Assembly (NCBI RefSeq): GCF_006345805.1
Contig: NC_042997.1
Location: 212,102,001-212,166,000, forward strand
DNA: 64,000 nt
Direction of reading: 5' to 3'
Source of the DNA: Octopus sinensis
Lineage: Eukaryota
Both the position numbers and the translations under genes were made by a program. Under the pieces are notes generated by a model that saw nothing but the letters and a program-made list of their open reading frames with translations, was not told the DNA's origin and did no database searches. Below are positions 1-64,000 of this stretch, piece after piece; within the stretch, counting starts at the first letter, position 1, and each line of letters opens with the position of its first letter.

Positions 1-618
1 CATCTGATGGTTGATGTTTTATTGATTTAAGTATGTTTCTCCATTTTCTAATTTTGTTACATATATATATATACATGTGTATACATATATATATATACAC
101 AAGTGTATACATTACACATGAAATGTATTTATTTATAAACTTTAAACTGAACTTCAATTGTTTTATAAACCTAACAGCTTGGTGTACGTAAATAAACGGC
201 GTAAATTAACGAAGGTATAAACCTGACGGAAATACACGAAGTTGACTACTTTCACTTCTAACAACCAAAGGCATGACTGCCGTTTTTTTTTTTTGTGAGG
301 GTCCGGGGACAGCAACTAGAAAGGCCTCCCCGGGCAGCACAGATTCTAGCTACGCTAGTGCCAATATTCCCTCTAACTCCATCTAATAAAAAGTTATCCG
401 ACTTCCACCCAGCATGTTGCGTCTTCTCACTAGCTTTTCTACTACATAGCCACTATCCACTGGAGCTGGTTGATCTCATACCTATTCTACTCAGGATCAC
501 CCGACTCCTCTACCCTCTCGTCTCTTATTCATTTGCATAAAACACTACACCTCATCTTTCTCAGACGTTAACTCTTGGAATATCTTTTCTGGAGTTGTTC
601 AAGAACATCAGTTACATC

Positions 619-1353
619 GGTTCTACTAGCGAACTGTGGTCCGGGTGCGCGCAGTCGCGCATCCGCGCTAGCTAGTCGTAAGTAGTCGATCCTACAACGA
701 CTTTTTAACCCTAACCCTAACTTGTTTATAAAAATAATTTATTTACTTAGTTTAAAAAATCATTTACTTTGCGTTTTATTTACTTAGTTCGAAAAATATT
801 ATTTAATATTATTTAATGGCGCGGGAGTGGCTGTGTGGTAAGTAGCTTGCTAACTAACCACATGGTTCCGGGTTCAGTCCCACCGCGTGGCATCTTGGGC
901 AAGTGTCTTCTGCTATAGCCCCGGGCCGACCAATGCCTTGTGAGTGGATTTGGTAGACGGAAACTGAAAGAAGCCTGTCGTATATATGTATATATATATA
1001 TATGAGTGTGTGTGTGTCTGTGTTTGTCCCCCTAGCATCGCTTGACAACCGATGCTGATGTGTTTAAGTCCCCGTCACTTAACGGTTCGGCAAAAAGAGA
1101 CCGATAGAATAAGTACTGGGCTTACAAAGAATAAGTCCCGGGGTTGATTTGCTCGACTAAAGGCGGTGCTCCAGCATGGCCGCAGTCAAATGACTGAAAC
1201 AAGTAAAAGAGTAGAAGAGAGTAAAGAGTAAAGAGTAATTTTCTTTGATCTGTATTCAGCCTTGAAATACAAACATACGCGGAAGTCGTTGTAGGATCGA
1301 CTACTTACGACTAGCTAGCGCGAGTGCGTGCACCACTGTTCGCTAGTAGTACC
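619..1353. mobile_element. Non-autonomous TIR element (MULE/Merlin-like) with 9-bp TSD and a nested SINE
   Basis: TIRs GGTTCTACTAGCGAAC.../...GTTCGCTAGTAGTACC, inner arms 664-702 vs 1285-1322, TSD agttacatc at 610-618 and 1354-1362. Further copies at 6889-7616 and 13075-13808. Confidence 0.8.
818..1238 (+). mobile_element. tRNA-derived SINE (abundant family). Other copies: ~1490-1840(-), 4190-4352(-), 7088-7500(+), 7750-8100(-), 10450-10612(-), 13272-13692(+), 17335-17742(-), 18770-19105(+), 26478-26872(+), 43490-43882(-), 47850-48210(-)
   Basis: A-box-like tggctgtgtggt and B-box-like ggttcagtcc head, shared body, internal TA/TG microsatellite, (gagtaaa)n tail. Confidence 0.85.
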
Positions 1354-1847
1354 AGTTACATCAACTTAAACAGTTTCGGAGTCGCCTACGAAAGGTCACC
1401 AGTGCAGACCCTCACAGGTCAAACCAAACCATAAAAAAAAAAAATTAGTCTTATTAGGTTAATTATGTCTTTTTTTTTTATTTTTGATACTTGTTTCAGT
1501 CATTTGACTGCGGCCATGCTGGAGCACCACCTTTTAGTACTTATTCTATCGGTCTGTTTTGACGAACCGCTAAGTGACGGGGACATAAACACACCAGCAT
1601 CGGTTGTCAAGCAATGCTAGGGGGACAAACACAGACACACAAACATATACACACACACTTATATACATATACATATATACGACAGGCTTCTTTCAGTTTC
1701 CGTCTACCAAATCCACTCACAAGGCATTAGTCGGCCCGGGGCTATAGCAGAAGACACTTGCCCAAGATGCCACGCAGTGGGACTGAACCCGGAACCATGT
1801 GGTTGGCTAGCAAGCTACTTACCACACAGTCACTCCTGTACCTTATA

Positions 1848-2132
1848 TATATTATATAATAGTGTACATTTAAACACAAAAGAAAACTACCCTTTAACAG
1901 GTAATTTTTATATGCTAGAAAGAGCAGCCAACATGTCCAAAACCACGATTTAATAGCAATTTTCGAAGTAAATGAAAAAAAAAAAAATAACATGGTAAAA
2001 GTTTTTTATTTACTTCGAAAATTGCTATTAAATCGTGGTTTTGGCCGTGTTGGCTGCTCTTTCTAGCATGTAAAAATGACCTGTTAAAGGGTAGTTTTCT
2101 TTTGTGTTTAATGTACACTATTTTAAAATATA
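1848..2132. mobile_element. Foldback/MITE-like palindrome with ~125-bp arms (copy at ~8107-8389)
   Basis: atagtgtacatttaaacacaaaagaaaactaccc...ttcgaagtaaat is the reverse complement of atttacttcgaa...gggtagttttcttttgtgtttaatgtacactat. Confidence 0.8.
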
Positions 2133-2374
2133 ATATGTTGTCTGTTGACCATTTATACATGCTAGGTTACTGGTGGTGATATTTTATAACGAATATTCAC
2201 TACCCTATATATGTATGTATATATATACGGTTAAGTATTGAGATTCAAGTGAATGCTAATGAATTCACATGAATATGGTCCTTAACTAGGATGCACCGGA
2301 AATCTATATGGTGTTAACCATACGACAAGTGGGGTGATTACAAATAGGAAAAAAGCAACAAGAATGGATTAAAA

Positions 2375-2462
2375 TCTCGGTACAATCGTTTCGTACGAGG
2401 ACATCTTTAATAAGCTACAAAAAATGCAGTGAATACAGATGGCTCGTACTCGTCAGCCGAAA
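2375..2462 (-). ncRNA. Type I hammerhead ribozyme motif with canonical core and long stem II
   Basis: Minus strand reads tttcgg CTGACGA GTACGAG...CTCGTAC GAAA CGATTG TA ccgaga: 6-bp stem I, 7-bp stem II extended by catct/agatg, 2-bp stem III with tetraloop, GUA cleavage triplet. Confidence 0.85.
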
Positions 2463-2879
2463 AAACATCAGAGAATTCCCAAACATCAAAAGGGGTAGAT
2501 ACAAAAGAGGGTGTAAGATTAACTGCATTGAAGAAAGTTCGATTCATGGAGATCCGATGAAAGGTTTTAAACTTACAGAATTTGTGCATGTCTACATATA
2601 GCTCATATTGAATTGCTAATCAAGTTGTGTGAAGAAATTTTCGGATACAGTCATGCAAAATTTCTGAAAATCCGAGTAAGAAGCAAAGTGACTGTCATAT
2701 CGTGTAGAGGAACAGATTGTTATTGAAATTTACAAGAATCGCAGATAAGTTCGATTCTTGGAGATCCGATGAAAAGTCTTGAACTTACAGAATATGTGCA
2801 TGTCCTTATAGTTCATAATCCAGTTTTGTGAGGAGATTTAGGCTACAATCATGCGAAAATATCAGGGAATCCGATTCCC

Positions 2880-3397
2880 TGATATTTTAGCATTTCATCA
2901 TTAATATGGTGAACAGTTTTATTCCTCGGGGCCAGTATAGCCTTTTCGCCAATCCAATCCATATTCTGATAATTAGCTTGTAGATCTGGGAACACTGCAT
3001 CTCTGAGATCAGAAGGGGTCTTAACAATGTTACAAATGGAATCGATGGCAATATTACCATTTTCATCCCCTGGTATTTTGCCTTCGCCAAGTGCAAGGAG
3101 GGTGTGAGGAAATGCTGCTGATGTGATATTACGTCGCATATGAGCACGCATATTGGTGTGAAGTTTGAGAGTTACTTCCCTTTATTAAAAAAAATATGCA
3201 TTAAAAAGGAAAAAAATGATGGTAAATTATTTGTAAACTCATAGACTCATCGTAGACGTGCGCTAATACCCAGAAGGGCTCGATATGAATCACGACTATA
3301 AGATACCCGGTTTTGGTTAAACTGCATCGCAAAATGTGGGAGTAGTTAGGAATCTAAATCGGAGTAGACAGACACACAACCTTTCTTTTATATATAA
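2880..3397 (-). mobile_element. Helitron fragment: 5'-end-like segment joined to part of the RepHel PIF1-type helicase
   Basis: Translation LKLHTNMRAH...LLALGEG...VFPDLQANYQNMDWIGEKAILAPRNKTVHHIN matches Helitron helicase motifs. 3180-3397 resembles the 5' end of the short Helitron at 21785-22112. Confidence 0.8.
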
Positions 3398-4357
3398 ATA
3401 TTTTCGTCCTAAAAAACTTTGTATGGATTGAATGGTTACCTCTATGGAAATATATACACGTACATCATACATACATGTGTGTATAGATGAATATATAAAT
3501 ACATTTAAATATCTATATACACTTTTGGGCGATCTTTCTGTTTCTTAGAGATAACTTTATCCCGTCCGATTCGCTCCAAAATTTACAGGGACATGTAGAA
3601 TGAGGTGACGATGCTCGTGGGCTACCTTAGAAATCCCTATCTTAAAAGGTGTGGTTGCTAGGGGCCATCTTCCTCACTCACCCTATTTCCTCCAGTACCC
3701 TCTCACTCCTCTACATATGACAGGCCACTACGGTTATTTAATGTAAAGTCTTCCTCAAATCATTCTCTCGCTATTTACTCTCTTCCAAGAACATTTTCAC
3801 TCACTCTTATCTCTTAGCTTCCCATACATTTTACTCATGTATCTATCAGCGTCATAGACAGAAACAAATATTACATCGCCATCGCCTTCTATTGTCTACC
3901 TGTCAACACACACACAGTGAATTACTTTCACTTTATTCGTTGCACACTGTGTGTGTGCGTGTGCTGTATCCCACACTAAGAAAAGCACTTGACTCATACA
4001 CCACAATGTGAGTTTTCTCTAAATTTTGCTTAATTGGGGTTGAAATTTTAAAAAGTGGACCTGGCAAGACCCGATGCATTCTACTCTTAAAAATGCTAGG
4101 TAAATTGTAATTGAAGAAATCCTATATTGTAGATTTCTATAAGAGACAAAGGGAGGCAGATAAAATCTGCCTTTTATAATAAGAGATATACGACGGGCTT
4201 CTTTCAGTTTCCATCTACCAAATCCACTCACAAGGCTTTGGTCGACCCAAGGCTATAGTAGAAGACAGTTGCCCAGGGTGCCATGCAGTGGGACTGAACC
4301 TGGAAGCATGTGGTTGGTAAGCAAGCTACTTACCACACAGCCACTCCTGTGCCCTGT

Positions 4358-4565
4358 TCAGGCTTGGATATAAACATGTAGTGTAAAACATTCAGACATC
4401 ATCATTATCTTCCCATATCCTGTGGTACATTCTTTCGCCATAGCCACAAGAATGATGAAAATAGCTCTTCCTTCCCATCTGAAGGAAGGAGGCGTGACAA
4501 TATTGACGATAGACTTGGCTGATAAACCGACTCGTCCCACACACGACAGCAGTCGTTCGACATAG
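4358..4565 (-). mobile_element. Tx1/L1-type LINE ORF2 C-terminal fragment (copy at ~10619-10825)
   Basis: YVERLLSCVGRVGLSAKSIVNIVTPPSF.WEGRAIFIILVAMAKEC is homologous to the fragments at 37459-37870 and 56630-56760. Confidence 0.7.
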
Positions 4566-4848
4566 ATAGAAAGATAGATCGATATAGATAGAAAGATAGA
4601 TAGATAGTGGGTGGCACAAAGTGTAAAGGTCGTAAATAGCGCTATAAGCGAGGAAGATAACTAGAAACATATTTGCGTTTCTAATAAGTCGAGGAAGTAA
4701 ACTGTAAATACGGAGACGTACTTGCATAGCAAGTGATTTGATCTGAGATCGTGTGCTGAAACGAAAACAATTGCAGCGTGGAAGGTGTTTGTAAGCCATT
4801 TAAGAAACACACAAAAGCCGTTCGATTCACTTCAACATTTAAGTTTAA

Positions 4849-4898
4849 TTTGTCAAAATATTTTCGTCGCTAAAATCCGCGACCTGTTCACTGACAAA
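4849..4898 (-). ncRNA. Minimal type I hammerhead motif with G3:C8 core swap, 56 bp upstream of the DCTD ATG
   Basis: Minus strand reads tttgtca GTGAACA g gtcgc-ggatttta-gcgac GAAA ATAT T T tgacaaa: 7-bp stem I, 5-bp stem II, palindromic AATATT stem III. Confidence 0.7.
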
Positions 4899-4954
4899 GT
4901 CCGTGCTGCATCTCTGTAAATATTTCCCGCAAAATCTTACGTATTTGAATCACT

Positions 4955-5614
4955 ATGGCAGAAGGTACTTCTGTTAACGATGTTGCATCAAGCATGTCTA
5001 AAAAGCGGCAAGGTTACCTTGGATGGGATGATTACTTCATGTCAGTGGCTTTCCTCTCTGCTAAACGTAGCAAAGACCCAAGAACTCAGGTAGGAGCTTG
5101 TATTGTTAATGAAGATCGACGTATTGTTGGCACCGGATATAACGGTATGCCTCGAGGTTGTAGTGACGATGTTTTTCCTTGGTGCAATGAAGGTCCCACT
5201 GAGCTACAGAAGAAAAGTCTCTACGTATGTCATGCTGAGCTTAATGCTATTCTCAATAAGAACTCTGCAGACGTTCGCAATTGCACTATGTATGTCGGTT
5301 TGTTTCCTTGCAATGAATGTGCTAAAGTCATTATACAGTCTGGAATTAAAAAAGTAATATTCTATTCGGATAAATATAAGGACCGAACTACCTCTCAAGC
5401 TTCTCGAAAAATGTTTAAAGATGCTGAAATAGACTGTGACCAGTATCAACCTACAGACGAACAAATTGTTATAGATTTTACTTCAATAGAAGAAAAGAAA
5501 AACCGGATTATAAGTTCAGACAGACAAAATGTTACAGGTTTTACTTCATTAGATAAAAAGAAAGACCGGATTAAAAGTTCAGATTCACACCTTTTTTCTG
5601 AACTTTCATTTTAA
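4955..5614 (+). CDS. DCTD: Intronless dCMP deaminase (deoxycytidylate deaminase), 219 aa, with a duplicated C-terminal segment
   Basis: Family motifs [32 protein letters not shown], zinc/catalytic HAE (H93,E95), PCxxC (P118-C119-N-E-C122), SGIKKV and IVIDF lie in one uninterrupted ATG-to-TAA frame. Confidence 0.95.
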
Positions 5615-6009
5615 TCAGATGCGAACATAAACACTTGGAATTCATTATATTGCCACCATTGCCTTTTCATAATGATATCCTGTTATATTTTCTAGCTAAA
5701 ATATTAACTGTTGTATTTTTAACGAACATTTTTATTCCATTTTGTTTTCGTTTGTGTGTACATAACATTTTAACTTCCTCTTTCTAAGAAAGTGAAACTA
5801 TCCACATTTGCTCCAATACGCAGTAGCGTAGCTGGGGGGTGTGTGTGCATTTTGGGCCGCACTTTTAAAGAGGCTAATGTGTGTGTGTCTGTATTTATGT
5901 ATGTGTGTATAAGTAGTTATATGCTTATATTATCTATTATAGTAATATTTTTCTGTTGAAATCCGTTTTAAGGCGGTCAATAGTTTAATTAAAGATGTGT
6001 CTATACATG

Positions 6010-6060
<51 letters not shown>

Positions 6061-6061
6061 T

Positions 6062-6104
<43 letters not shown>

Positions 6105-8633
6105 TATTACATATTATATTTTATATTTTATATTTCTATTTCCTTGTCTATTTATATTTACTATATATGTTGTATAATGCCTTTACTAATATGTAATGGT
6201 GTAATAAAGTATTGATTGAGTATCATCTGATGGTTGATGTTTTATTGATTTAAGTATGTTTCTCCATTTTCTAATTTTGTTACATATATATATATACATG
6301 TGTATACATATATATATATACACAAGTGTATACATTACACATGAAATGTATTTATTTATAAACTTTAAACTGAACTTCAATTGTTTTATAAACCTAACAG
6401 CTTGGTGTACGTAAATAAACGGCGTAAATTAACGAAGGTATAAACCTGACGGAAATACACGAAGTTGACTACTTTCACTTCTAACAACCAACAACTGCTT
6501 TCACTTCTAACAACCAACAACTACTTTCACTTCTAACAACTAACAACTGCCGTTTTTTTTTTTGTGAGGGTCCGGGGACAGCAACTAGAAAGGCCTCCCC
6601 GGGCAGCACAGATTCTAGCTACGCTAGTGCCAATATTCCCTCTAACTCCATCTAATAAAAAGTTATCCGACTTCCACCCAGCATGTTGCGTCTTCTCACT
6701 AGCTTTTCTACTACATAGCCACTATCCACTGGAGCTGGTTGATCTCATACCTATTCTACTCAGGATCACCCGACTCCCTCTACCCTCTCGTCTCTTATTC
6801 ATTTGCATAAAACACTACACCTCATCTTTCTCAGACGTTAACTCTTGGAATATCTTTTCTGGAGTTGTTCAAGAACATCAGTTACATCGGTTCTACTAGC
6901 GAACTGTGGTCCGGGTGCGCGCAGTCGCGCATCCGCGCTAGCTAGTCGTAAGTAGTCGATCCTACAATGACTTTTTAACCCTAACCCTAACTTGTTTATA
7001 AAAATAATTTATTTCTTTAGTTTAAAAAATCATTTACTTTGCGTTTTATTTACTTTGTTCGAAAAATATTATTTAATATTATTTAATGGCGCGGGAGTGG
7101 CTGTGTGGTAAGTAGCTTGCTAACTAACCACATGGTTCCGGGTTCAGTCCCACCGCGTGGCATCTTGGGCAAGTGTCTTCTGCTATAGCCCCGGGCCGAC
7201 CAATGCCTTGTGAGTGGATTTGGTAGACGGAAACTGAAAGAAGCCTGCCGTATATATATATGTATATATATATGAGTGTGTGTGTGTCTGTGTTTGTCCC
7301 CCTAGCATCGCTTGACAACCGATGCTGATGTGTTTACGTCCCCGTCACTTAACGGTTCGGCAAAAAGAGACCGATAGAATAAGTACTGGGCTTACAAAGA
7401 ATAAGTCCCGGGGTCGATTTGCTCGACTAAAGGCGGTGCTCCAGCATGGCCGCAGTCAAATGACTGAAACAAGTAAAAGAGTAGAAGAGAGTAAAGAGTA
7501 ATTTTCTTTGATCTGTATTCAGCCTTGAAATACAAACATACGCGGAAGTCGTTGTAGGATCGACTACTTACGACTAGCTAGCGCGAGTGCGTGCACCACT
7601 GTTCGCTAGTAGTACCAGTTACATCAACTTAAACAGTTTCGGAGTCGCCTACGAAAGGTCACCAGTGCAGACCCTCACAGGTCAAACCAAACCATAAAAA
7701 AAAAAATTAGTCTTATTCGGTTAATTATGTCTTTTTTTTTTATTTTTATACTTGTTTCAGTCATTTGACTGCGGCCATGCTGGAGCACCACCTTTTAGTA
7801 CTTATTCTATCGGTCTGTTTTGACGAACCGCTAAGTGACGGGGACATAAACACACCAGCATCGGTTGTCAAGCAATGCTAGGGGGACAAACACAGACACA
7901 CAAACATATACACACACACTTATATACATATACATATATACGACAGGCTTCTTTCAGTTTCCGTCTACAAATCCACTCACAAGGCATTAGTCGGCCCGGG
8001 GCTATAGCAGAAGACACTTGCCCAAGATGCCACGCAGTGGGACTGAACCCGAACCATGTGGTTGGCTAGCAAGCTACTTACCACACAGTCACTCCTGTAC
8101 CTTATATATATTATATAATAGTGTACATTTAAACACAAAAGAAAACTACCCTTTAACAGGTAATTTTTATATGCTAGAAAGAGCAGCCAACATGTCCAAA
8201 ACCACGATTTAATAGCAATTTTCGAAGTAAATGAAAAATAAAAAATAACAAGGTAAAAGTTTTTTATTTACTTCGAAAATTGCTATTAAATCGTGGTTTT
8301 GGCCGTGTTGGCTGCTCTTTCTAGCATGTAAAAATTACCTGTTAAAGGGTAGTTTTCTTTGTGTTTAAATGTACACTATTTTAAAATATGAATATGTTGT
8401 CTGTTGACCATTTATACATGCTAGGTTACTGGTGGTGATATTTTATAACGAATATTCACTACCCTATATATGTATGTTATATATACGGTTAAGTAATTGA
8501 GATTCAAGTGAATTCTAATGAATTCACATGAATATGGTCCTTAACTAGGATGCACCGGAAATCTATATGGTGTTAACCATACGACAAGTGGGGTGATTAC
8601 AAATAGGAAAAAAGCAACAAGAATGGATTAAAA

Positions 8634-8720
8634 TCTCGGTACAATCGTTTCGTACGAGGACATCTTTAATAAGCTACAAAAATGCAGTGAATACAGATGG
8701 CTCGTACTCGTCAGCCGAAA
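8634..8720 (-). ncRNA. Type I hammerhead ribozyme motif (copy in unit 2)
   Basis: Identical to 2375-2462 except for one A in a homopolymer within the stem II loop. Confidence 0.85.
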
Positions 8721-9139
8721 AAACATCAGAGAATTCCCAAACATCAAAAGGGGTAGATACAAAAGAGGGTGTAAGATTAACTGCATTGAAGAAAGTTCGA
8801 TTCATGGAGATCCGATGAAAGGTTTTAAACTTACAGAATTTGTGCATGTCTACATATAGCTCATATTGAATTGCTAATCAAGTTGTGTGAAGAAATTTTC
8901 GGATACAGTCATGCAAAATTTCTGAAAATCCGAGGAAGAAGCAAAGTGACTGTCATATCGTGTAGAGGAACAGATTGTTATTGAAATTTACAAGAATCGC
9001 AGATAAGTTCGATTCTTGGAGATCCGATGAAAAGTCTTGAACTTACAGAATATGTGCATGTCCTTATAGTTCATAATCCAGTTTTGTGAGGAGATTTAGG
9101 GTACAATCATGCGAAAATATCAGGGAATCCGATTCCCTG

Positions 9140-9655
9140 ATATTTTAGCATTTCATCATCATTAATATGGTGAACAGTTTTATTCCTCGGGGCCAGTATA
9201 GCCTTTTCGCCAATCCATCCATATTCTGATAATTAGCTTGTAGATCTGGGAACACTGCATCTCTGAGATCAGAAGGTGTCTTAACAATGTTACAAATGGA
9301 ATCGATGGCAATATTACCATTTTCATCCCCTGGTATTTTGCCTTCGCCAAGTGCAAGGAGGGTGTGAGGAAATGCTGCTGATGTGATATTACGTCGCATA
9401 TGAGCACGCATATTGGTGTGAAGTTTGAGAGTTACTTCCCTTTATTAAAAAAATATGCATTAAAAAGGAAAAAAGATGGTAAATTATTTGTAAACTCATA
9501 GACTCATCGAAGACGTGCGCTAATACCCAGAAGGGCTCGATATGAATCACGACTATAATACCCGGTTTTGGTTAAACTGCATCGCAAAATGTGGGAGTAG
9601 TTAGGAATCTAAATCGGAGTAGACAGACACACAACCTTTCTTTTATATATAAATA
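9140..9655 (-). mobile_element. Helitron helicase fragment (unit 2 copy, frameshifted)
   Basis: Same sequence as 2880-3397 with a 1-nt deletion near 9215 and a 3-nt insertion near 9155. Confidence 0.8.
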
Positions 9656-11126
9656 TTTTCGTCCTAAAAAACTTTGTATGGATTGAATGGTTACCTCTAT
9701 GGAAATATATACACGTACATCATACATACATGTGTGTATAGATGAATATATAATACATTTAAATATCTATATACACTTTTGGGCGATCTTTCTGTTTGTT
9801 TCTTAGAGATAACTTTATCCCGTCCGATTCGCGCCAAAATTTACAGGGACATGTAGAATGAGGTGACGATGCTCGTGGGCTACCTTAGAAATCCCTATCT
9901 TAAAAGGTGTGGTTGCTAGGGGCCATCTTCCTCACTCACCCTATTTCCTCCTCCAGTACCCTCTCACTCCTCTACATATGACAGGCTACTACGGTTATTT
10001 AATGTAAAGTCTTCCTCAAATCATTCTCTCGCTATTTACTCTCTTCCAAGAACATTTTCACTCACTCTTATCTCTTAGCTTCCCATACATTTTACTCATG
10101 TATCTATCAGCGTCATAGACAGAAACAAATATTACATCGCCATCGCCTTCTACTGTCTACCTGTCAACACACACACAGTGAATTACTTTCACTTTATTCG
10201 TTGCACACTGTGTGTGTGCGTGTGCTGTATCCCACACTAAGAAAAGCACTTGACTCATACACCACAATGTGAGTTTTCTCTAAATTTTGCTTAATTGGGG
10301 TTGAAATTTTAAAAAGTGGACCTGGCAAGACCCGATGCATTCTACTCTTAAAAATGCTAGGTAAATTGTAATTGAAGAAATCCTATATTGTAGATTTCTA
10401 TAAGAGACAAAGGGAGGCAGATAAAATCTGCCTTTTATAATAAGAGATATACGACGGGCTTCTTTCAGTTTCCATCTACCAAATCCACTCACAAGGCTTT
10501 GGTCGACCCAAGGCTATAGTAGAAGACAGTTGCCCAGGGTGCCATGCAGTGGGACTGAACCTGGAAGCATGTGGTTGGTAAGCAAGCTACTTACCACACA
10601 GCCACTCCTGTGCCCTGTTCAGGCTTGGATATAAACATGTAGTGTAAAACATTCAGACATCATCATTATCTTCCCATATCCTGTGGTACATTCTTTCGCC
10701 ATAGCCACAAGAATGATGAAAATAGCTCTTCCTTCCCATTTGAAGGAAGGAGGCGTGACAATATTGACGATAGACTTGGCTGATAAACCGACTCGTCCCA
10801 CACACGACAGCAGTCGTTCGACATAGATAGAAAGATAGATATAGATAGAAAGATAGATCGATATAGATAGAAAGATAGATAGACAGTGGGTGGCACAAAG
10901 TGTAAAGGACGTAAATAGCGCTATAAGCAAGGGAGATAACTAGAAACATATTTGCGTTTCTAATAAGTCGAGGAAGTAAACTGTAATACGGAGATGTACT
11001 TGCATAGCAAGTAATTTGATCTGAGATCGTGTGCTGAAACGAAAACAATTGCAGCGTGGAAGGTGTTTGTAAGCCATTTAAGAAACACACAAAAGCCGTT
11101 CGATTCACTTCAACATTTAAGTTTAA

Positions 11127-11176
11127 TTTGTCAAAATATTTTCGTCGCTAAAATCCGCGACCTGTTCACTGACAAA
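11127..11176 (-). ncRNA. Minimal G3:C8 hammerhead motif (copy in unit 2)
   Basis: Identical to 4849-4898. Confidence 0.7.
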
Positions 11177-11232
11177 GTCCGTGCTGCATCTCTGTAAATA
11201 TTTCCCGCAAAATCTTACGTATTTGAATCACT

Positions 11233-11853
11233 ATGGCAGAAGGTACTTCTGTTAACGGTGTTGCATCAAGCACGCATAAGCGGCGAGGTTACCTTGGATG
11301 GGATGAATACTTCATGTCAGTGGCTTTCCTCTCTGCTCAACGTAGCAAAGACCCAAGAACTCAGGTAGGAGCTTGTATTGTTAATGAAAATCAACGTATT
11401 GTTGGCACCGGATATAACGGTATGCCTCGAGGTTGTAGTGACGATGGAAAAACATCGTCACTACAACCTCGAGGCATACCGTTGGTGCCATAACAGTCCC
11501 ACTGAGCTAGATAACAATATCTCTACGTATGTCATGCTGAGCTTAATGCTGTTCTCAATAAGAACTCTGCAGACGTTCGCAATTGCACTATGTATGTCGG
11601 TTTGTTTACTTGCAATGAATGTGCTAAAGTCATTACACAGTCTGGAATTAAAGAAGTCATATACTTTTCGGATAAATATAAGGACCGAACTACCTCTCAA
11701 GCTTCTCGAAAAATGTTTAAACATGCTGAAATAAAATATCGCCAGTATCATCCTACAGACGAACAAATTGTTATAGATTTTACTTCAATAGAAGAAAAGA
11801 AAGACCCGATTATAAGTCCAGTTTCGCACCTTCCTTCTAAAGTTTCAACTTTA
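11233..11853 (+). pseudogene. DCTD: Disrupted second dCMP deaminase copy
   Basis: Aligns to 4955-5614. A foldback event adds a net 28 nt near 11446-11481, giving TAA at 11491-11493 plus two more stops. A 1-nt loss near 11516 restores the frame, and PCNEC is changed to TCNEC. Confidence 0.9.
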
Positions 11854-12262
11854 ATCAGATGCGAACATAAACACTTGGAATTCATTATATTGCCACCACT
11901 GCCTTTTCATAATGATATCCTGTTATATTTTCTAGCTAAAATATTAACTGTTGTATTTTTAACGAACATTTTTATTCCATTTTGTTTTCGTTTGTGTGTA
12001 CATAACATTTTAACTTCCTCTTTCTAAGAAAGTGAAACTATCCACATTTGCTCCAATACGCAGTAGCGTAGCTGGGGGGTGTGTGTGCATTTTGGGCCGC
12101 ACTTTTAAAGAGGCTAACGTGTGTGTGTCTGTATTTATTGTATGTGTGTATAAGTAGTTATATGCTTATATTATCTATTATAGTAATATTTTTCTGTTGA
12201 AATCCGTTTTAAGGCGGTCAATAGTTTAATTAAAGATGTGTCTATAAATGTGTGTGTATATA

Positions 12263-12349
<87 letters not shown>

Positions 12350-14088
12350 CATATTATATTTTATATTTCTATTTCCTTGTCTATTTATATTTACTATATA
12401 TGTTGTATAATGCCTTTACTAATATGTAATGGTGTAATAAAGTATTGATTGAGTATCATCTGATGGTTGATGTTTTATTGATTTAAGTATGTTTCTCCAT
12501 TTTCTAATTTTGTTACATATATATATATACATGTGTATACATATATATATATACACAAGTGTATACATTACACATGAAATGTATTTATTTATAAACTTTA
12601 AACTGAACTTCAATTGTTTTATAAACCTAACAGCTTGGTGTACGTAAATAAACGGCGTAAATTAACGAAGGTATAAACCTGACGGAAATACACGAAGTTG
12701 ACTACTTTCACTTCTAACAACCAAAGGCATGACTGCCGTTTTTTTTTTTGTGAGGGTCCGGGGACAGCAACTAGAAAGGCCTCCCCGGGCAGCACAGATT
12801 CTAGCTACGCTAGTGCCAATATTCCCTCTAACTCCATCTAATAAAAAGTTATCCGACTTCCACCCAGCATGTTGCGTCTTCTCACTAGCTTTTCTACTAC
12901 ATAGCCACTATCCACTGGAGCTGGTTGATCTCATACCTATTCTACTCAGGATCACCCGACTCCCTCTACCCTCTCGTCTCTTATTCATTTGCATAAAACA
13001 CTACACCTCATCTTTCTCAGACGTTAACTCTTGGAATATCTTTTCTGGAGTTGTTCAAGAACATCAGTTACATCGGTTCTACTAGCGAACTGTGGTCCGG
13101 GTGCGCGCAGTCGCGCATCCGCGCTAGCTAGTCGTAAGTAGTCGATCCTACAATGACTTTTTAACCCTAACCCTAACTTGTTTATAAAAATAATTTATTT
13201 CTTTAGTTAAAAAATCATTCACTTTGCATTTTATTTACTTTGTTCGAAAAATATTATTTAATATTATTTAATGGCGCGGGAGTGGCTGTGTGGTAAGTAG
13301 CTTGCTAACTAACCACATGGTTCCGGGTTCAGTCCCACCGCGTGGCATCTTGGGCAAGTGTCTTCTGCTATAGCCCCGGGCCGACCAATGCCTTGTGAGT
13401 GGATTTGGTAGACGGAAACTGAAAGAAGCCTGTCGTATATATATATGTATATATATATGAGTGTGTGTGTGTCTGTGTTTGTCCCCCTAGCATCGCTTGA
13501 CAACCGATGCTGATGTGTTTACGTCCCCGTCACTTAACGGTTCGGCAAAAAGAGACCGATAGAATAAGTGCTGGGCTTACAAAGAATAAGTCCCGGGGTC
13601 GATTTGCTCGACTAAAGGCGGTGCTCCAGCATGGCCGCAGTCAAATGACTGAAACAAGTAAAAGAGTAGAAGAGAGTAAAGAGTAAAGAGTAATTTTCTT
13701 TGATCTGTATTCAGCCTTGAAATACAAACATACGCGGAAGTCGTTGTAGGATCGACTACTTACGACTAGCTAGCGCGAGTGCGTGCACCACTGTTCGCTA
13801 GTAGTACCAGTTACATCAACTTAAACAGTTTCGGAGTCGCCTACGAAAGGTCACCAGTGCAGACCCTCACAGGTCAAACCAAACCATAAAAAAAAAAAAT
13901 TAGTTTTATTAGGTTAATTATGTGTTAATTTCCTTAGTTTTCATTATGTTAGTCCCTGAAATAATTGTGCCTATTTTTAATGTTTTATTCTTGTTTTTTT
14001 TTCGTTTAATTCTTAGATTATTCACATTGTAGTCTTTGTTTAACTTTCAAGTTTATTTGAATTTTATTCTTTATTTAAAAAATTATTC

Positions 14089-14903
14089 GGCGATGTTTCG
14101 CTTGTCGTAGCACACGTTTCCGTCGATTTCCGTAAAAAACTTTTATTTTTTTACATAAGTAATGAGAGCGAAAGAGACTAAGAGGAAGCGATTTTATGAC
14201 GAGGAAGTTTCTCTTTGAAGTCTCCGTGTGTGTGTTTGATGGGGTGTGGGAGACAGACAGTATGTTGTGTAAGTGAAGTGCTTCTGTTAGTGTGTGCGAA
14301 GAGACAGAGAGAGTAATGTGTGAAAGAGAGAAATAACTGAAATTTTTTACTCGATGTATGTGTATATGTATGTATGCATGTATGTGTGTGTGTGTATGTA
14401 TCTATGTATGTGTGTATGTGTATGTATCTATGTATGTGTGTGTATGTATCTATGTATGTGTGTAAGTATGTATGTGTGTATGTATGTATGTATGGCCGAT
14501 TCAGTGTAACATACATACACACACATACATAGATACATACACACACATACATAGATACATACACACATACATACTTACACACATACATAGATACATACAC
14601 ACACACACATACATGCATACATACATATACACATACACCGAGTAAAAAATTTCAGTTATTTCTCTCTTTCACACATTACTCTCTCTGTCTCTTCGCACAC
14701 ACTAACAGAAGCACTTCACTTACACAACATACTGTCTGTCTCCCACACCCCATCAAACACACACACGGAGACTTCAAAGAGAAACTTCCTCGTCATAAAA
14801 TCGCTTCCTCTTAGTCTCTTTCGCTCTCATTACTTATGTAAAAAAATAAAAGTTTTTTACGGAAATCGACGGAAACGTGTGCTACGACAACCGAAACATT
14901 GCC
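14089..14903. mobile_element. 815-bp foldback element with ~400-bp TIRs and 8-bp TSD
   Basis: GGCGATGTTTCG...CGAAACATTGCC termini; the arms, including mirrored TATG/CATA microsatellites, pair to a ~15-nt centre at 14495-14509; TSD aattattc at 14081-14088 and 14904-14911. Confidence 0.85.
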
Positions 14904-16084
14904 AATTATTCATTCAAATCTTGATAAGCATGTTATTGTTTGAATTTTTCAACCATAGATTCAAATTCCTATTTCATTATATGTTTGTAATTATGTGTAA
15001 ATTTTTAATTTCATCCTTAGTGTAAAATCATTCGTGAATCTAACCCCTATCAGGTTCTTTGTTCGCCCCTTGTGGGTAATAAAAAAACAGGTATGTATGT
15101 GTGTGTGTGTGTGTGTGTGTAGGGGTCTATATCACCTTAAAACACTGCAACACTTTGTACCACTCAACACACTGCAACACTTTATAACACTCTACACACT
15201 GAAACATTTAATCTAAATTCAGGCACACAACCCCCCACCTCCCCCGAAATACTTTGTTTCCCTACTGACAAAGATCTTCAAAAGGAATTAGTGTCTTCGG
15301 TCAGATTCTGGGTCATTAGGTTATTACATAGCATCAACAATGAATTATCAGTCAATGTGTTAGTGAACAACACATATACACAACACAAACACACGCACAC
15401 ACACGTTATAATCTGAGACTGGTTATAAAATAATATAGGAATGTTTTATTCAAATAAGGTAATTATCAAAAACAACAAATGGAGTAAATAAAATAACAAA
15501 ACGTTATAAAAACAAAATGATCCTTCTTTTTACTAATTTTAATGACTTTCAATCAGCCACTCATATTTTCTGATAGATTATCAACCAAGAAATGATAAAG
15601 TGTAGAGTCAGTGAAGTATATGATTAAAGTGTTGAGATGACATCCACTTGTGAAGTGATCACATCCACTTATCTAACCCTCACTTAATATCTTCAGATAA
15701 CAGATTATTCTCCACAAACAAATAATGAATGTAACCTCAGTGGAAAGTGATTGTAGGGACAATGCTGCGTCAAAAAGAGATAAAAGAAATGGGTTCTATA
15801 CAGCAGTACACAGCAATACCTAGATTAGCTATGGCCAATAAGACATAAGAGATAGTTTGGTAAAGGGTCAGCCACCAATCCATTTCAACATCTGGTCACT
15901 TACAAATGGGGTGTCTTCTCCCTCTTTCTCATAAACATTGCTACAACTGTCTTTGCTTGTCTAAATCATCTGGGTACACACCCCATTCAGCACATGACCA
16001 ATGAGAACAAGATGCAAGGTAAACATGTTTCTGTCATATTAAACCTCTTCAGTGCATACCGAGTAATACACATGCAGTAGAATC

Positions 16085-16330: not shown

Positions 16331-19170
16331 CTCCTTTGTTTCCTATTGATAGTTGGAATGCTTGCTTTAGAACAGAACCAGGTATTCCTTGCACTAATAA
16401 CCATTTAGAGGGATGTCACAATGCACACATCCGAATCTATGGAAACTAATTACGGCACTGAAAAAGGAAGAACATTTGGCACAATTGAGAAAGGTTGAAT
16501 TTGATTGAGGTGAGATCTGCGAGAGCCCCCCAAAAATATAAAGATACAAACAAACAGCTGCAGATAATTGTTGAGCGATCGAGTCCCGAAAATAAAATGG
16601 AATTTTTACAAGCAATCGCTCAAGACCTTCATCATTATTAAAGCTTTTAGCAATGTTTTTATGCTTTACTATAATTTTTATCATATCTTTATTTCAATGA
16701 TTTACTTTTTTCTAATATTGGGAATGGAATTATCAGGAGTCAAATTACTGGTCACTGTCTGTCTGTCTGTATGTATACACAAGTATATTACACACACACA
16801 CACACACACACTAATGTACACACATTCACTCAAATCCTTGAGGAAAGAATACATTTCAAGAGAGCAACACTTATAGAAATACTATTTTACTTTTTCTCAG
16901 AACATTTAATGAACCATAAACAAATGCAACTTCCCCACAAATAGATTTAGATTCCAATTTTTCACATAATAAAGTGCCATGATACTTTGGCAATCCATTC
17001 TAGGAAGTGAAATGGAATCTTGCTTGGTATGGAATAAATACAACTAATTAGGTTTGGTTTGGCAGAAATTCTTCATTTGAAAGCAATGTAGGAAACAGAA
17101 AAGAAAATTTGGTAGAAAGCAAAAATGTGACATTTTTGTCAAGCTAAAAGAAATGGCACCATGTACTTAATTTGTATTCTCATAGCGGAAGAGTGTCAAG
17201 TCAAAATAAGAAACACAGATATAGCTTAAAAGTATATAAAATATTAATTCAAATATTAATAATAATAATAATAATAACAGTACAATATTAAATGAAAGTT
17301 TACATCTCTGTGTTGCCATAACTGAGCAATTCTCTCTTTACTCTCTTTTACTCTTTTACTGGTTTCAGTCATTTGACTGCGGCCATGCTGGAGCACCGCC
17401 TTTAGTCGAGCAAATCGACCCCGGGACTTATTCTTTGTAAGCCCAGTACTTATTCTATCGGTCTCTTTTGCCGAACCGCTAAGTGACGGGGACGTAAACA
17501 CACCAGCAATGCTAGGGGGACAAACACAGACACACAAACATATACACACACACTTATATATATATATATACATATATACGACAGGCTTCTTTCAGTTTCC
17601 GTCTACCAAATCCACTCACAAGGCATTGGTCGGCCCGGGGCTATAGCAGAAGACAGTTGCCCAAGATGCCACGCAGTGGGACTGAACCCGGAACCATGTG
17701 GTTGGTTAGCAAGCTACTTACCACACAGCCACTCCTGCGCCTGTTTTTTTTTAATGAGAATCTTATGGCCATTGATGAAAGCCAAAGTGAGCAGTGTCTT
17801 GTTAAAGTTGTCACAGCTTGCAGTCTTTCACAATAGGCAACAATGAGAAGCAATCAAATTTAGCTGATAGTAAAATTATTCATTTTATTCCAACTAAAAA
17901 TATTTATTCAGATCAAAGAAATCTAGAAATAAAAATTGGATGAGTGATATTTCCATTTTCATTTCAAATTTCAACCGGAGCAAATATATCTTCTCCAAAT
18001 CAATATCCGGGAGTTGTAGTTTAGATGTAAGTATTTATTGAAAAGGGCCATGATCATCCCGTCTCTTCTTTTTTCAGTCACAGTGGACTGAGGACAACAA
18101 TACCTAAAGTGACCTTTAGTCTAAGATGATAGAGTTTCGTTTAAAAGCAATTTAGCTACTGCTTCTAGCTGGTTCATTGAACAATGGCCACCGCATAGAT
18201 TTCTATATTATATCTTTAACAAAATTGGTGAAATAACAGTGAGGAAATAAAGACTTTAGTCCATCCCAAGTTATTTGATTATTGTTGGTTATAAATAGCA
18301 CCCACCCCTCTCTCTCCTTCCCCTTTCAGCACCTCCCCACTCGCCTCCAGACCCCACCAATGCCGCTTTGATTCACAGACAATCAATGAAAACTCAATTC
18401 CAGACACCACTGTTAGCTCCATCTTATTTGAATGAGATTATCTCTGTATGGATTACCTGACTCACACTGTGATTTAATCCAGGCATAATGACATAAGACA
18501 CAAATCACACAAACACCTGCTCTCATCTCGTTAACCAGTTTCCCAAGGGATTAGAAGGAACTTTCTTCACACAACAAATAATAATCAGATTATCAACTGC
18601 GACGCAGTCACCATCTCCTCTGTGCCTCACAACAACCCTGGCTTCTGACATTAATTAAAGACCCCATTGTTCAGCCATTGTCACCTATGATTGATTTCTG
18701 TAATTTCGTACCAGTAATTAAACATGATGACAGGAAAAGAAAAAAAAAAGAATCTTTAATCAGACTCCAGTCCATTGGAATGGCTGTATGGTTAAGAGGT
18801 TTGCTTTGCTACCCACATGGTTTCAGGTTCAGTCCTAACAAGTGGTGTCTTGGGTAGGTGCCTTGGACCAGCCAAACTTTTGTGAGTGGATTTCGTAGAT
18901 GGAAACTGAAAGAAGCCTGTTGTATGTGCATGTGTCCCCCACATCACCACCACTACTTGACAACTAGAGATAGAGCAAAAGAAACTGATAAATTAAATAC
19001 CAGACTTAAAAAAAAGAGAAGTCCTTGGGTCACTTTGTTTGACCCTTCAAGGTGGTGCCCCAGTATGGGCACAGTTCAATGACTGAAACAAGTGAAAGAT
19101 AAAAGATTATAATAGTTAAAGTATAAATTCAATTTTATCAAACAATACAGGAGTTAAAGTGAAGAATTAA

Positions 19171-21400
19171 CCCTTTTGATACCAACCTGGCTGAAACCAC
19201 CTCTGGCTCTGCAGTATAAATGTCTTGTTTCCAAAAGTTCTGAATTAAAATCATCCACCAAACCTTAGTCACAATTTATGTTCGTAACACCAGCTTAATG
19301 ATAACTAAGTTATTTGACTAAATTCTTTGTTATATTTAAAGTAATTGAAAAAAATACAGAGCATCTCTACAGAAATATGGTAATAGAAGGGTTCAAATAT
19401 ATAATAGAGAAACAATTCTTAACCCTTTTGATACCAACCTGGCTGAAACCACCTCTGGCTCTGCAGTATAAATGTCTTGTTTCCAAAAGTTCTGAATTAA
19501 AATCATCCACCAAACCTTAGTCACAATTTATGTTCCTAATACTAGCTGAATGATAACTAAGTTATTTGACTAAATTCTTTGTTATATTTAAAGTAATTGA
19601 AAAAAATACAGAGCATCTCTACAGAAATATGGTAATAGAAGGGTTCAAATATATAATAGAGAAACAATTCTTAACCCTTTTGATACCAACCTGGCTGAAA
19701 CCACCTCTGGCTCTGCAGTATAAATGTCTTGTTTCCAAAAGTTCTGAATTAAAATCATCCACCAAACCTTAGTCACAATTTATGTTCCTAATACTAGCTG
19801 AATGATAACTAAGTTATTTGACTAAATTCTTTGTTATATTTAAGTAATTGAAAAAAATACAGAGCATCTCTACAGAAATATGGTAATAGAAGGGTTCAAA
19901 TATATAATAGAGAAACAATTCTTACCCTTTTGATACCAACCTGGCTGAAACCACCTCTGGCTCTGCAGTATAAATGTCTTGTTTCCAAAAGTTCTGAATT
20001 AAAATCATCCACCAAACCTTAGTCACAATTTATGTTCCTAATACTAGCTGAATGATAACTAAGTTATTTGACTAAATTCTTTGTTATATTTAAAGTAATT
20101 GAAAAAAATACAGAGCATCTCTACAGAAATATGGTAATAGAAGGGTTCAAATATATAATAGAGAAACAATTCTTAACCCTTTTGATACCAACCTGGCTGA
20201 AACCACCTCTGGCTCTGCAGTATAAATGTCTTGTTTCCAAAAGTTCTGAATTAAAATCATCCACCAAACCTTAGTCACAATTTATGTTCCTAATACTAGC
20301 TGAATGATAACTAAGTTATTTGACTAAATTCTTTGTTATTTTAAGTAATTGAAAAAAATACAGAGCATCTCTACAGAAATATGGTAATAGAAGGGTTCAA
20401 ATATATAATAGAGAAACAATTCTTAACCCTTTTGATACCAACCTGGCTGAAACCACCTCTGGCTCTGCAGTATAAATGTCTTGTTTCCAAAAGTTCTGAA
20501 TTAAAATCATCCACCAAACCTTAGTCACAATTTATGTTCCTAATACTAGCTGAATGATAACTAAGTTATTTGACTAAATTCTTTGTTATATTTAAAGTAA
20601 TTGAAAAAAATACAGAGCATCTCTACAGAAATATGGTAATAGAAGGGTTCAAATATATAATAGAGAAACAATTCTTAACCTTTTGATACCAACCTGGCTG
20701 AAACCACCTCTGGCTCTGCAGTATAAATGTCTTGTTTCCAAAAGTTCTGAATTAAAATCATCCACCAAACCTTAGTCACAATTTATGTTCCTAATACTAG
20801 CTGAATGATAACTAAGTTATTTGACTAAATTCTTTGTTATATTTAAAGTAATTGAAAAAAATACAGAGCATCTCTACAGAAATATGGTAATAGAAGGGTT
20901 CAAATATAATAGAGAAACAATTCTTAACCCTTTTGATACCAACCTGGCTGAAACCACCTCTGGCTCTGCAGTATAAATGTCTTGTTTCCAAAAGTTCTGA
21001 ATTAAAATCATCCACCAAACCTTAGTCACAATTTATGTTCCTAATACTAGCTGAATGATAACTAAGTTATTTGACTAATTCTTTGTTATATTTAAAGTAA
21101 TTGAAAAAAATACAGAGCATCTCTACAGAAATATGGTAATAGAAGGGTTCAAATATATAATAGAGAAACAATTCTTAACCCTTTTGATACCAACCTGGCT
21201 GAAACCACCTCTGGCTCTGCAGTATAAATGTCTTGTTTCCAAAAGTTCTGAATTAAAATCATCCACCAAACCTTAGTCACAATTTATGTTCCTAACACTA
21301 GCTGAATGATAACTAAGTTATTTGACTAAATTCTTTGTTATATTTAAAATCAATTGAAAGAAACACAGAGCATCTCTACAGAAATTCGGTAACAAAAGGG
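19171..21400. repeat. Nine-copy ~252-bp tandem satellite built from a piggyBac-type MITE
   Basis: Period 252 (19314, 19566...). The unit starts TTAA|CCCTTTTGATACC and the array ends GGTAACAAAAGGG|TTAA. Solo copies at 42067-42288 and, inverted, at ~22468-22710. Confidence 0.92.
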
Positions 21401-21784
21401 TTAACAAAGCTGTCTGCAATGTCTGGCTCTTAGTAATGGAATATTCTATGAATTACCATAAACCTGAGTTAGAAAAGAAAACTATTGCAAACACAAAGAC
21501 AATTGCATCTGAAAGCAGTTACCTAGGTTTTATTTTGTGATTAAATAAAATTAATTCAATGACAGCAGCTGCAATGAAAATAAGGAAAATATAACCCCTA
21601 CAGCAATATCAGATATTTTAGTGGAGCCATACCAAAATGGAAATAATTTCCACACAGAATCCAAAAGCGATTTGTGCCAAGAGGCTGGATTTGGGTTTTA
21701 AATTTCGTTTTGCTCTCAATATTATTTCATCTTTGTTTTAAACATTTGATTATATTTAAAAAAAAATATGATTTTACATTATTA

Positions 21785-25082: not shown

Positions 25083-27049
25083 GTTTCTGCTGCAAGAAAC
25101 ACGGCACTCACAGGTTGCTCATGCAACACCTTATACTCTCTTCAGAGCCACATCATCATCATTTAATGTCCATTCTCCCTGCTGTTATGGGTTGGATGCT
25201 TTGATAGGTGGTGGCAAGCCTCAATTGCCTGTTTTGGTACGGCTTCTATGGCTGGATGCCCTTCCTAACACTGACCACTTTACTAGAGGCTGTTTAAGTG
25301 GCTCCAGCTTAGGTGCTTTATACATGGCCCTAGCAATGATGCTTTTTACACATCACATATATGAGTGTGTGTGTATGTGCACAGTGTCTCCACATATGCT
25401 CAGTAGCTGACCACACAAAGCCCTGGAGCCATTCCAACTGATCCCACCTTTTTCCAAAATATTAAATTCAGTTTAATGTACACACACACACACACAGACT
25501 GTCATTGGCTGAAATCTATAGATTTATTCTCCAGAATATTGGAACATGGAAATAGTTCTTATCTTTATTGGGGTAGTTTTGGGGGTTGAAGCGAAAATGG
25601 AAGACTTCCCCCTTAATTCTAACAATAGTTTTGTTTGTTTTTTATCAAAGTTTCTCTGCATTGATTTTTCTCCTCTTGAAGTTGTTGAGTAAAACATTAA
25701 AATACGAAATAAATAAATCAAAGAACAAAAGGAATTTCCATTGGAGATATTTTCTCTCCTAAAACTGCTAATGATACCAAGCGGTGGCATCGTTTGTATT
25801 TCACACATTTTCAACATATATTTAGCTGCAGCAAACATTTAGATTAGTGATGGCAGCAACAAAAAAGCAAGTTTAGCCAATAGCAAAAGAAACACTTCCT
25901 TCTTATTGATTCAATATTTTTACCAAAATCTAATCTCATAAAAAAAACAAAAAAACAACCCTACATTAAAAAGAAGCCATTGTTTGTCAGAACATTCTCC
26001 AGATATTATTGTATATTGAATATTTTCAATATTAAGACTATTTGCTACCTGTATTGATAGCAAAGCAGTTGATGGGTGAAGGACTGGCCTGTTGTTTATG
26101 GAAAGGAAGCATCGAGTTCCCAATAAAAGCCGACGAAATTTGTTCAGTGAAGTTGTTTGACAAATCCAGTTCAGGTATTTCACAAAATATACATTCGAAT
26201 AAAATAGAATCGGTTCGATTTTAAGATATTATCACTTCTATTTTGATTTTATACACAACATAATACAATATTACTTGGATGAATATGCTTGAGAGTGCAT
26301 ATAAATATACACACATACAGTACATATATGCACACACACACACACACACACACACACCACACACACACATATATATAAAATAAAAAAATAATGATAATAA
26401 TTTAAGTGAGGAAAGGAGAAGTGAAATTGACATTACAATTATTTCTGTAAACGGACGATTTTTAAAATTTCCTATCTCAGGAGAGGCTGTGTAGTAAGTA
26501 GCTTGCTAACCAACCACATGGCATCTTGGGCAAGTGTCTTCTGCTATAGCCCCAGGCCGACCAAAGCCTTGTGAGTGGATTTGGTAGACGGAAACTGAAA
26601 GAAGCCTGTCGTATATATGTATATATATATATGTATGTATGTATGTATGTGTGTGGGTTTGTGAGTCTGTGTTTGTCCCCCTAGCATTGCTTGACAACCG
26701 ATGCTGGTGTGTTTACGTCCCCGTCACTCAGCGGTTCGGCAAAAAGAGACCGATAGAATAAGTACTGGGCTTACAAAGAATAAGTCCCGGGGTCGATTTG
26801 CTTGACTAAAGGTGGTGCTCCAGCATGGCCGCAGTCAAATGACTGAAACAAGTAAAAGAGAGTAAAAAGAGTATACAATGTTACGTAATACATTCCACAC
26901 ATAGAGAGGTATATCCTGCTATTCAAGTTCATTCACTTCGTCACACATCTTGATTTGGTTGATTGTGGTTTCAAAGCTTGCCAACCACTCCGAGAGGTTA
27001 GTGGGTGCTTTTTACATGCAACTAATACAAGGGCCAGTTAGGCAATACT

Positions 27050-62139: not shown

Positions 62140-64000
<1,861 letters not shown>

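Follow-up and report, generated by a model that had tools for sequence, protein, structure and literature searches.

The dCMP deaminase gene DCTD is as a rule regarded as a metabolic gene that evolves slowly and is present in a single copy. DCTD proteins assemble into ring hexamers with the allosteric site at the protomer interfaces (PMC12088426), and loop-3, the most variable loop of the superfamily, is implicated in dCMP deaminase allostery (PMC4683357). A precedent for a functional departure is CDADC1, a vertebrate dCTP deaminase that arose from a DCTD-like ancestor (PMC12088426, PMC12184417). In the 2020 preprint of Calcino, Kenny and Gerdol a DCTD tandem cluster was tied to hemizygous regions in the Octopus sinensis assembly that is also used here (bioRxiv 10.1101/2020.09.15.298695). 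The DNA described below, further referred to as the window, is a stretch of 64,000 nucleotides of O. sinensis chromosome CM016859.1 (GCA_006345805.1, 213.4 Mb), and contains a DCTD paralogue designated c1, an intact single-exon open reading frame (ORF) of 219 amino acids at positions 4955-5614 of the plus strand, identical to the protein annotated there. This gene adds a new and rapidly evolving member to a known enzyme family, in a gene cluster already noted in the literature, and its two sister copies are pseudogenes from which it differs almost only by amino-acid-changing substitutions.

According to self-BLAST and three-way alignments c1 is part of a tandem head-to-tail array of three units of ~6.26 kb each, which extends on the plus strand from ~4.5 kb upstream of window position 1 (left edge at ~L001:520, where L001 is the upstream O. 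sinensis DNA) to position 13923, so that 2.2 units lie at positions 1..13923 of the window. Each unit contains one DCTD-like sequence in the order c0 (pseudogene), c1 (gene), and c2 (pseudogene), and the middle one is the only intact gene among the three. When indels were removed, 183 codons were comparable between c1 and c2, and 34 nucleotides differed in them (6.2%); 27 codons were changed, 26 nonsynonymously and a single one, V134 (GTA/GTC), synonymously. Over the whole ORF 46 substitutions were found in 592 ungapped columns (7.8%) versus 47 substitutions in ~5560 nt of the rest of the unit (0.85%; Fisher p=4e-23). The excess ends at the ORF boundaries: the first upstream difference is met at position 4735, 220 nt before the ATG, with none in between, and the ~390 nt after the stop codon contain two substitutions (5659 and 5878) and one 1-nt indel. 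The 34 differences form only 15 clusters and are concentrated at codons 73-88 and 156-162. An earlier sequence-only reading of this locus had reported about 35 substitutions (~6%) with one synonymous change, nearly identical DNA around the ORF, and clustering before the HAE motif and at about codon 156, and these observations were reproduced.

An internal control is provided by the pseudogenes. In the three-way alignment c1 is the odd one out at 46 of 592 ORF sites and at 27 of ~5300 flank sites (Fisher p=1e-28), while sites private to c0 or c2 show no excess in the ORF (2/592 versus 29/~5300 in the flanks, p=0.76). Since the pseudogene copies change at the flank rate, the same sequence with identical upstream DNA is not hypermutable once it is dead. 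The age of the array can be calibrated by the main arrays of O. sinensis and O. vulgaris, whose orthologous DNA diverges by 1.1-1.2%; the flank divergence of 0.85% makes the array no older than the split of these species, and its proposed youth is thus supported. The orthologous main-array genes of the two species differ at 2-7 nonsynonymous sites with a ratio of nonsynonymous to synonymous substitution rates (dN/dS, omega) of 0.2-0.9. The dS between c1 and the main array, 0.06-0.10, exceeds the ~0.01-0.025 between these species, and an orthologue of the c1 clade would therefore be expected in O. vulgaris, in the part of OX597814.1 (GCA_951406725.2) that is syntenic to the CDP-diacylglycerol-synthase-like gene around the array.

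The comparison of c1 with the pseudogene type by the Nei-Gojobori method (NG86) resulted in dN 0.078, dS 0.0175, and omega 4.5. Maximum likelihood codon models were fitted to eight taxa, where the one-ratio model gave a family-wide omega of 0.98, and the two-ratio model gave 3.8 on the c1 and pseudogene branches versus 0.71 in the background (likelihood ratio test of two-ratio versus one-ratio, p=0.010; foreground omega versus 1, p=0.027). In simulations with independent mutations 6.7 synonymous codons were expected and the probability of one or none was 0.004, which changed to 0.023 when the observed clusters were kept together. Moreover, none of the 34 substitutions created a stop codon; the chance of this is 0.22-0.27, and the joint probability with the synonymous deficit is 0.0006-0.005. 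The positive selection proposed from the sequence alone has moderate support from the omega values, the foreground test, and the simulations.

Polarisation of the differences was based on the six main-array copies, three O. vulgaris copies, O. bimaculoides, and Argonauta, the last being allowed to differ. It assigned 13 differences as derived in c1 and 11 as derived in the pseudogene type, all of them nonsynonymous. The derived states of 24 of the 34 differences are found in none of the six main-array and three O. vulgaris copies nor in O. bimaculoides, and the remaining 10 match the state of some other paralogue. Among 89 other DCTDs 72 positions have a conservation of 90% or more, and c1 has the consensus residue at each of these; none of 12 c1-derived replacements falls on them (4.6 expected, p=0.002). 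The changes in c1 occur only at variable positions, with the conserved catalytic, zinc-binding, and allosteric-motif residues all kept. They are located in the N-terminal tail, at residue 37 just after helix 1, in loop-3 (73-88), in strand 4 (133 and 136), and at residues 156 and 160-162.

The assignment of c1 to the DCTD family is based on the Pfam match (PF00383, E=7e-28), on the match to human DCTD 2W4L, and on the AlphaFold2 (AF2) model. By sequence c1 is collinear with 2W4L over 167 residues without gaps and with 60% identity (E=4e-66), and the model superimposes on it with a template modelling (TM) score of 0.96 and a root-mean-square deviation of 0.9 A. The predicted local distance difference test (pLDDT) is 84-99 over residues 21-180 as means of 10-residue blocks; both tails are disordered in the model, with pLDDT <50 at residues 185-203 and 208-214. 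The protein thus consists of a single ~20-kDa CMP/dCMP deaminase domain with the DCTD fold. The allosteric motif G(Y/W)N(A/G) is present as GYNG (residues 61-64, 5135-5146), the catalytic HxE motif, defined as in PMC12088426, as HAE (residues 93-95, 5231-5239), and the zinc-binding PCxxC motif as PCNEC (residues 118-122, 5306-5320). The residue preceding GYNG is T in the clade of c1 and the pseudogenes versus I or V in the other copies. Most likely c1 encodes a zinc-dependent dCMP deaminase that is active and whose regulation or oligomer contacts are altered.

Two parts of the protein are of special interest with regard to the substitutions, and both lie on the plus strand. Codons 73-88 (5171-5218), delimited by the alignment, the polarisation, and the secondary structure of the model, correspond to loop-3 between the Asn of GYNG and the HAE helix and are the densest block of differences between c1 and the pseudogenes. 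Codons 156-162 (5420-5440) are placed by the alignment and the model at the end of helix 4 and in strand 5, where H/R156D and the replacement of KYR by DCD at 160-162 comprise six c1-derived nucleotide changes. In addition, the disordered C-terminal tail of c1 contains an in-frame 63-nt tandem duplication on the same strand (5456-5581, as 5456-5518 and 5519-5581), found in no other copy, with two repeats that differ at 10 of 63 nt in nine changed codons, all nonsynonymous. The first polyA-like signals after the gene are at 5988 and 6203.

The reading frame of the sister copies is broken in comparison with the intact relatives. In the alignment c2 occupies 11233-11856 of the plus strand, and c0, which hardly differs from c2, lies at L001:3874-4453, 1.2 kb ahead of window position 1. 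Both share a 3-nt deletion, a run of substitutions, and an inverted copy, 36 nt long (11446-11481 in c2), of the sequence just before it, which stands in place of 8 nt. The net insertion of 28 nt shifts the frame and thereby brings three stop codons in frame in c2 (11491-11493, 11503-11505, and 11512-11514). The inverted copy is a template-switch signature, visible as a perfect 31-nt inverted repeat with a 6-nt spacer (11416-11446 / 11453-11483, plus strand) in c2 and c0 but not in c1. In c2, moreover, one nucleotide is missing near 11519, and one that is inserted near 11847 removes the normal stop; in c0 the ATG is changed to ATA, and this copy has a 1-nt deletion of its own but not that of c2. 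The PCxxC motif of the pseudogene type reads TCNEC, and changes of this type affect two conserved positions, P118 of that motif and I127. It follows that the sequence-only reading was mistaken in regarding the second copy as an intact paralogue and the locus as an array of working genes: there are three units with one gene and two pseudogenes, and the changes listed as N78H, E79N, G80S, Q85D, K86N, and S88Y involve codons in an out-of-frame stretch of the second copy.

The explanation that we favour, with a confidence slightly above even, is a burst of protein-level positive selection after a recent duplication, one of the two lineages having been lost later. According to it, the first duplication would have been followed by the fixation of ~15 substitutions each in the c1 lineage and in the ancestor that c0 and c2 share, nearly all amino-acid-changing and confined to the ORF, during the time in which the neutral DNA diverged by less than 1%. 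Selection on the protein would have taken place before either copy lost its function; then the template-switch inverted duplication would have killed the sister lineage, and the dead copy would have been duplicated once more and have drifted neutrally since. Selection may have been driven by a new specificity or by avoidance of joint assembly with the housekeeping hexamer; the latter and a change of regulation are the simplest mechanisms. A further-reaching version, in which DCTD was recruited within about the age of the species to a conflict-driven or specialised role, c1 having an altered substrate (dCTP or modified dCMP) or allostery and a presence/absence polymorphism, appears improbable; if it were true, c1 would be the survivor of a pair in which an adaptive burst, limited to the ORF, had altered loop-3 and the C-terminal strands.

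It is the flank and pseudogene controls that make the case for selection, while the support from synonymous sites alone is modest and sensitive to clustered mutations. Several points weigh against it. The dN/dS tests are only nominally significant because synonymous sites are very few; p weakens to ~0.02 once clustered changes are counted as single events, and by our own binomial estimate neither lineage alone would reach significance. Multi-nucleotide mutations can mimic positive selection, and tight clusters are present, with 5 changes in 8 nt at 5432-5439 and 4 in 7 nt at 5186-5192. The same ORFs bear complex structural mutations (the inverted duplication, the tandem duplication, and small indels), and the sister lineage is dead, with hits at invariant P118 and at I127. 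Some gene conversion is possible, given that 10 of 34 states are common to another paralogue. Finally, the data come from a single assembly of one individual, and the gene family has been reported as hemizygous.

Part of these points can be combined into a non-adaptive explanation, where error-prone repair or template switching produced mutation showers in redundant, relaxed copies, and the nonsynonymous excess together with the intact state of c1 is partly luck. The template-switch event in the sister copies is undoubted, the differences fall into only 15 clusters, the 63-nt duplication, the 3-nt deletion, and the 1-nt indels occur within the same 600 nt, the pseudogene-type changes strike invariant P118 and I127, and with clustering retained p is only 0.023. 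However, c0 and c2 share the sequence and identical upstream DNA and yet differ at the flank rate only, the excess stops at the ORF ends, 34 hits made no stop codon, and none of the changes derived in c1 falls on the 72 conserved positions (p=0.002). A templated origin of the substitution clusters was rejected as well: no 9-15-mer match was found nearby on either strand, and two chance 9-10-mers occur tens of kb away. The spectrum is mixed, with 14 transitions to 20 transversions and neither C>T nor A>G dominant, and a signature of deaminase action or of adenosine-to-inosine (A-to-I) editing was accordingly rejected. Together these data leave the shower explanation unlikely, although it deserves more weight than the two that follow.

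The locus may also be a patchwork or an artefact, resulting from ectopic conversion by diverged DCTD paralogues or a haplotype of different structure, or from mis-assembly or mis-polishing of a copy-variable repeat. The 10 of 34 differences that match some main-array or outgroup copy, the main-array-like states in the second C-terminal repeat of c1, the main-array homology that spans the ORF and parts of both flanks, and the reported location of O. sinensis DCTD genes in hemizygous deletions, including XP_029637964.1 (probably c1, by elimination), are consistent with such an origin. Nevertheless, it has a low probability: for 24 of the 34 differences the derived state does not occur in any of the six copies of the main array, nor in O. 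vulgaris (three copies) or O. bimaculoides, and the synonymous markers that separate the clade from the main array are common to c1 and the pseudogene type, which excludes a main-array donor. Gene conversion from the main array was for these reasons rejected for most sites. The only six DCTD-like O. sinensis proteins found in the protein database are five main-array proteins and c1, and the main array was fully sampled with all its six copies. Any donor would need the same nonsynonymous excess, and c0 and c2 are separate copies, each with changes of its own. A different kind of alternative, put forward in the sequence-only reading, is that c1 takes part in an arms race as an enzyme of host defence or against retroelements, for instance by depletion of the nucleotide pool or by acting on modified cytosine nucleotides. 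The recurrent amino-acid change concentrated in loop-3, close to substrate and regulator, the copy-number variation with gene birth and death in the family, the match of the c1 deaminase domain to the PADLOC dCTPase model, and the existence of DCTD-like enzymes acting on dCTP (PMC12088426) would fit it. Against it, c1 is a single-domain canonical DCTD which does not have the extra domain of bacterial defence dCTP deaminases, its best PADLOC stretch covering only positions 438-492 of the 630 in the profile. Moreover, its sisters did not survive as genes, it may itself be confined to one haplotype, and no intact c1-type protein is annotated in O. vulgaris. The role is without support and, in our estimation, quite improbable. 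The preferred explanation remains the burst of positive selection on the protein.

The origin of the array can be traced to another locus. A main array of six single-exon DCTD-like genes is located on the same chromosome, 18.7 Mb away (CM016859.1, 193.42 Mb; copies at 6524, 10001, 13909, 17037, 19760, and 25673 of the fetched sequence L003), and the orthologous O. vulgaris array has copies at 2479, 5198, and 9962 (L006). In O. bimaculoides (L004:10001-10615) and Argonauta (L005:10001-10573) one single-exon DCTD gene was present per 20-kb locus fetched, and every octopod DCTD gene seen, in O. bimaculoides, Argonauta, O. vulgaris, and both O. sinensis loci, has a single exon. The window unit is ~92% identical to the main-array units in the ORF, with flank homology at 4369-4710, 5517-5874, 6554-7087, and 7499-7700. 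Because this homology reaches parts of both flanks, the window array derives from the main array by DNA duplication and not by retroposition; the retrocopy of a spliced parent was rejected on account of the homologous flanks and the single-exon state of all octopod DCTD genes.

The main array itself is not uniform. In two copies the ATG is replaced by ACG, and their annotation begins at Met14; two copies have HAG in place of catalytic HAE, one of the two being truncated. The HAG type is common to O. vulgaris, where it forms an intact 198-aa ORF, and it may be a retained catalytically dead subunit. Two of three DCTD accessions in the preprint are main-array copies m3 and m4, and the third, XP_029637964.1, is probably c1, by elimination only. 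Thus in the O. sinensis/O. vulgaris lineage DCTD is an intronless multi-copy family with gene birth and death and a family-wide omega of about 1, and its description as a single conserved housekeeping gene in the sequence-only reading does not hold here. In the literature no paper on selection in cephalopod DCTD was found.

The window unit gained a 205-bp segment and ~3 kb that include a PIF1/Helitron-like fragment. The 205-bp segment ends 40 bp upstream of the ATG (4711-4915, second copy 10989-11193, plus strand) and is present in all three units; it has no counterpart in the main array and the O. bimaculoides locus, being array-specific among all sequences fetched, and may carry a new promoter or 5' untranslated region. 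The PIF1/Helitron-helicase-like ORF fragment occurs once in each unit on the minus strand (9145-9411, also 2887-3151), in the part without homology to the main array. It has 37% identity (E=2e-7, tblastn) with the PIF1-annotated gene beside O. bimaculoides DCTD (L004:6414-6605), which is a weak similarity, and a Pfam scan of the fragment alone gave no match. A Helitron may have taken part in moving or amplifying the DCTD gene.

The 20-kb neighbourhood of c1 falls within a range that is annotated as a single CDP-diacylglycerol-synthase-like gene of the minus strand, which has a CTP_transf_1 domain, and since the whole neighbourhood is inside this range the array presumably sits in an intron of that gene. 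The window was scanned for an exon motif of the host gene and for a usable anchor gene, and neither was found; an Rfam scan of the window revealed no family. Outside the array the window consists of satellites, microsatellites, and transposon debris. The satellites include a 252-bp unit repeated 8.9 times with 98% matches (19167-21402) and a 66-bp unit repeated 31.8 times with 97% matches (27047-29144), and a long TATA / 16-mer microsatellite at 62139-64000 reaches the window end. Directly to the right of the array end at 13923 there is a TG/CA-rich segment of ~830 bp (14081-14910) which matches its own reverse complement by 93.6%. A dispersed ~400-bp repeat resembling a short interspersed element (SINE), with 90-92% identity, is found at 818-1228, 7088-7498, and 13273-13683, one copy per array unit, and in two more inverted copies elsewhere in the window (17334-17741 and 43486-43881, minus strand).

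The significance of the locus is that in the O. vulgaris/O. sinensis lineage DCTD turns out to be an intronless family of variable copy number, and that c1 provides one of the clearest local contrasts obtainable from a single genome, with a built-in control in the form of pseudogenised sisters that change at the flank rate. If the signal holds, it would be a tractable case for the divergence of a hexameric allosteric enzyme right after duplication, with escape from paralogue interference, new regulation, or a new substrate as candidate routes; if it fails, it would be a useful example of clustered mutations imitating selection.

In comparison with known systems c1 is closest to animal DCTD (EC 3.5.4.12; human 2W4L), with which it shares the fold, the sequence identity, the motifs, and the 72 conserved positions described above. 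It differs from it in being an additional, lineage-specific copy at a new locus, in ~12-13 derived replacements, which fall on variable positions, in the duplication of 21 residues within the disordered C-terminal tail, in the new 205-bp segment before the ATG, and in an evolutionary rate ~9 times that of the neutral flanks. The hemizygous O. sinensis DCTD cluster (bioRxiv 10.1101/2020.09.15.298695) represents the same family in the same assembly; however, presence/absence and tandem duplication only are reported in the preprint, and the second locus, the pseudogenes, and the substitution pattern are not described there. CDADC1 is a precedent for a DCTD duplicate that gained a new substrate and lost the classical allostery (PMC12088426, PMC12184417), but it is ancient and conserved, with ~514 residues in two tandem deaminase domains joined by a long linker, in contrast to the very young c1 with one domain. 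The AvcD and PADLOC dCTPase proteins share with c1 a homologous zinc deaminase domain, to whose region the match of c1 is confined, and they differ in the large extra N-terminal domain and in acting on dCTP, c1 being a 219-aa single-domain protein without the two-domain arrangement. The loop preceding the HxE helix is a target of selection in APOBEC3 genes. The hot spot of c1 at codons 73-88 is the corresponding variable loop, which makes c1 similar in this respect to AID/APOBEC-type deaminases, while by fold its matches are dCMP deaminases, with no polynucleotide cytidine deaminase among the top 50.

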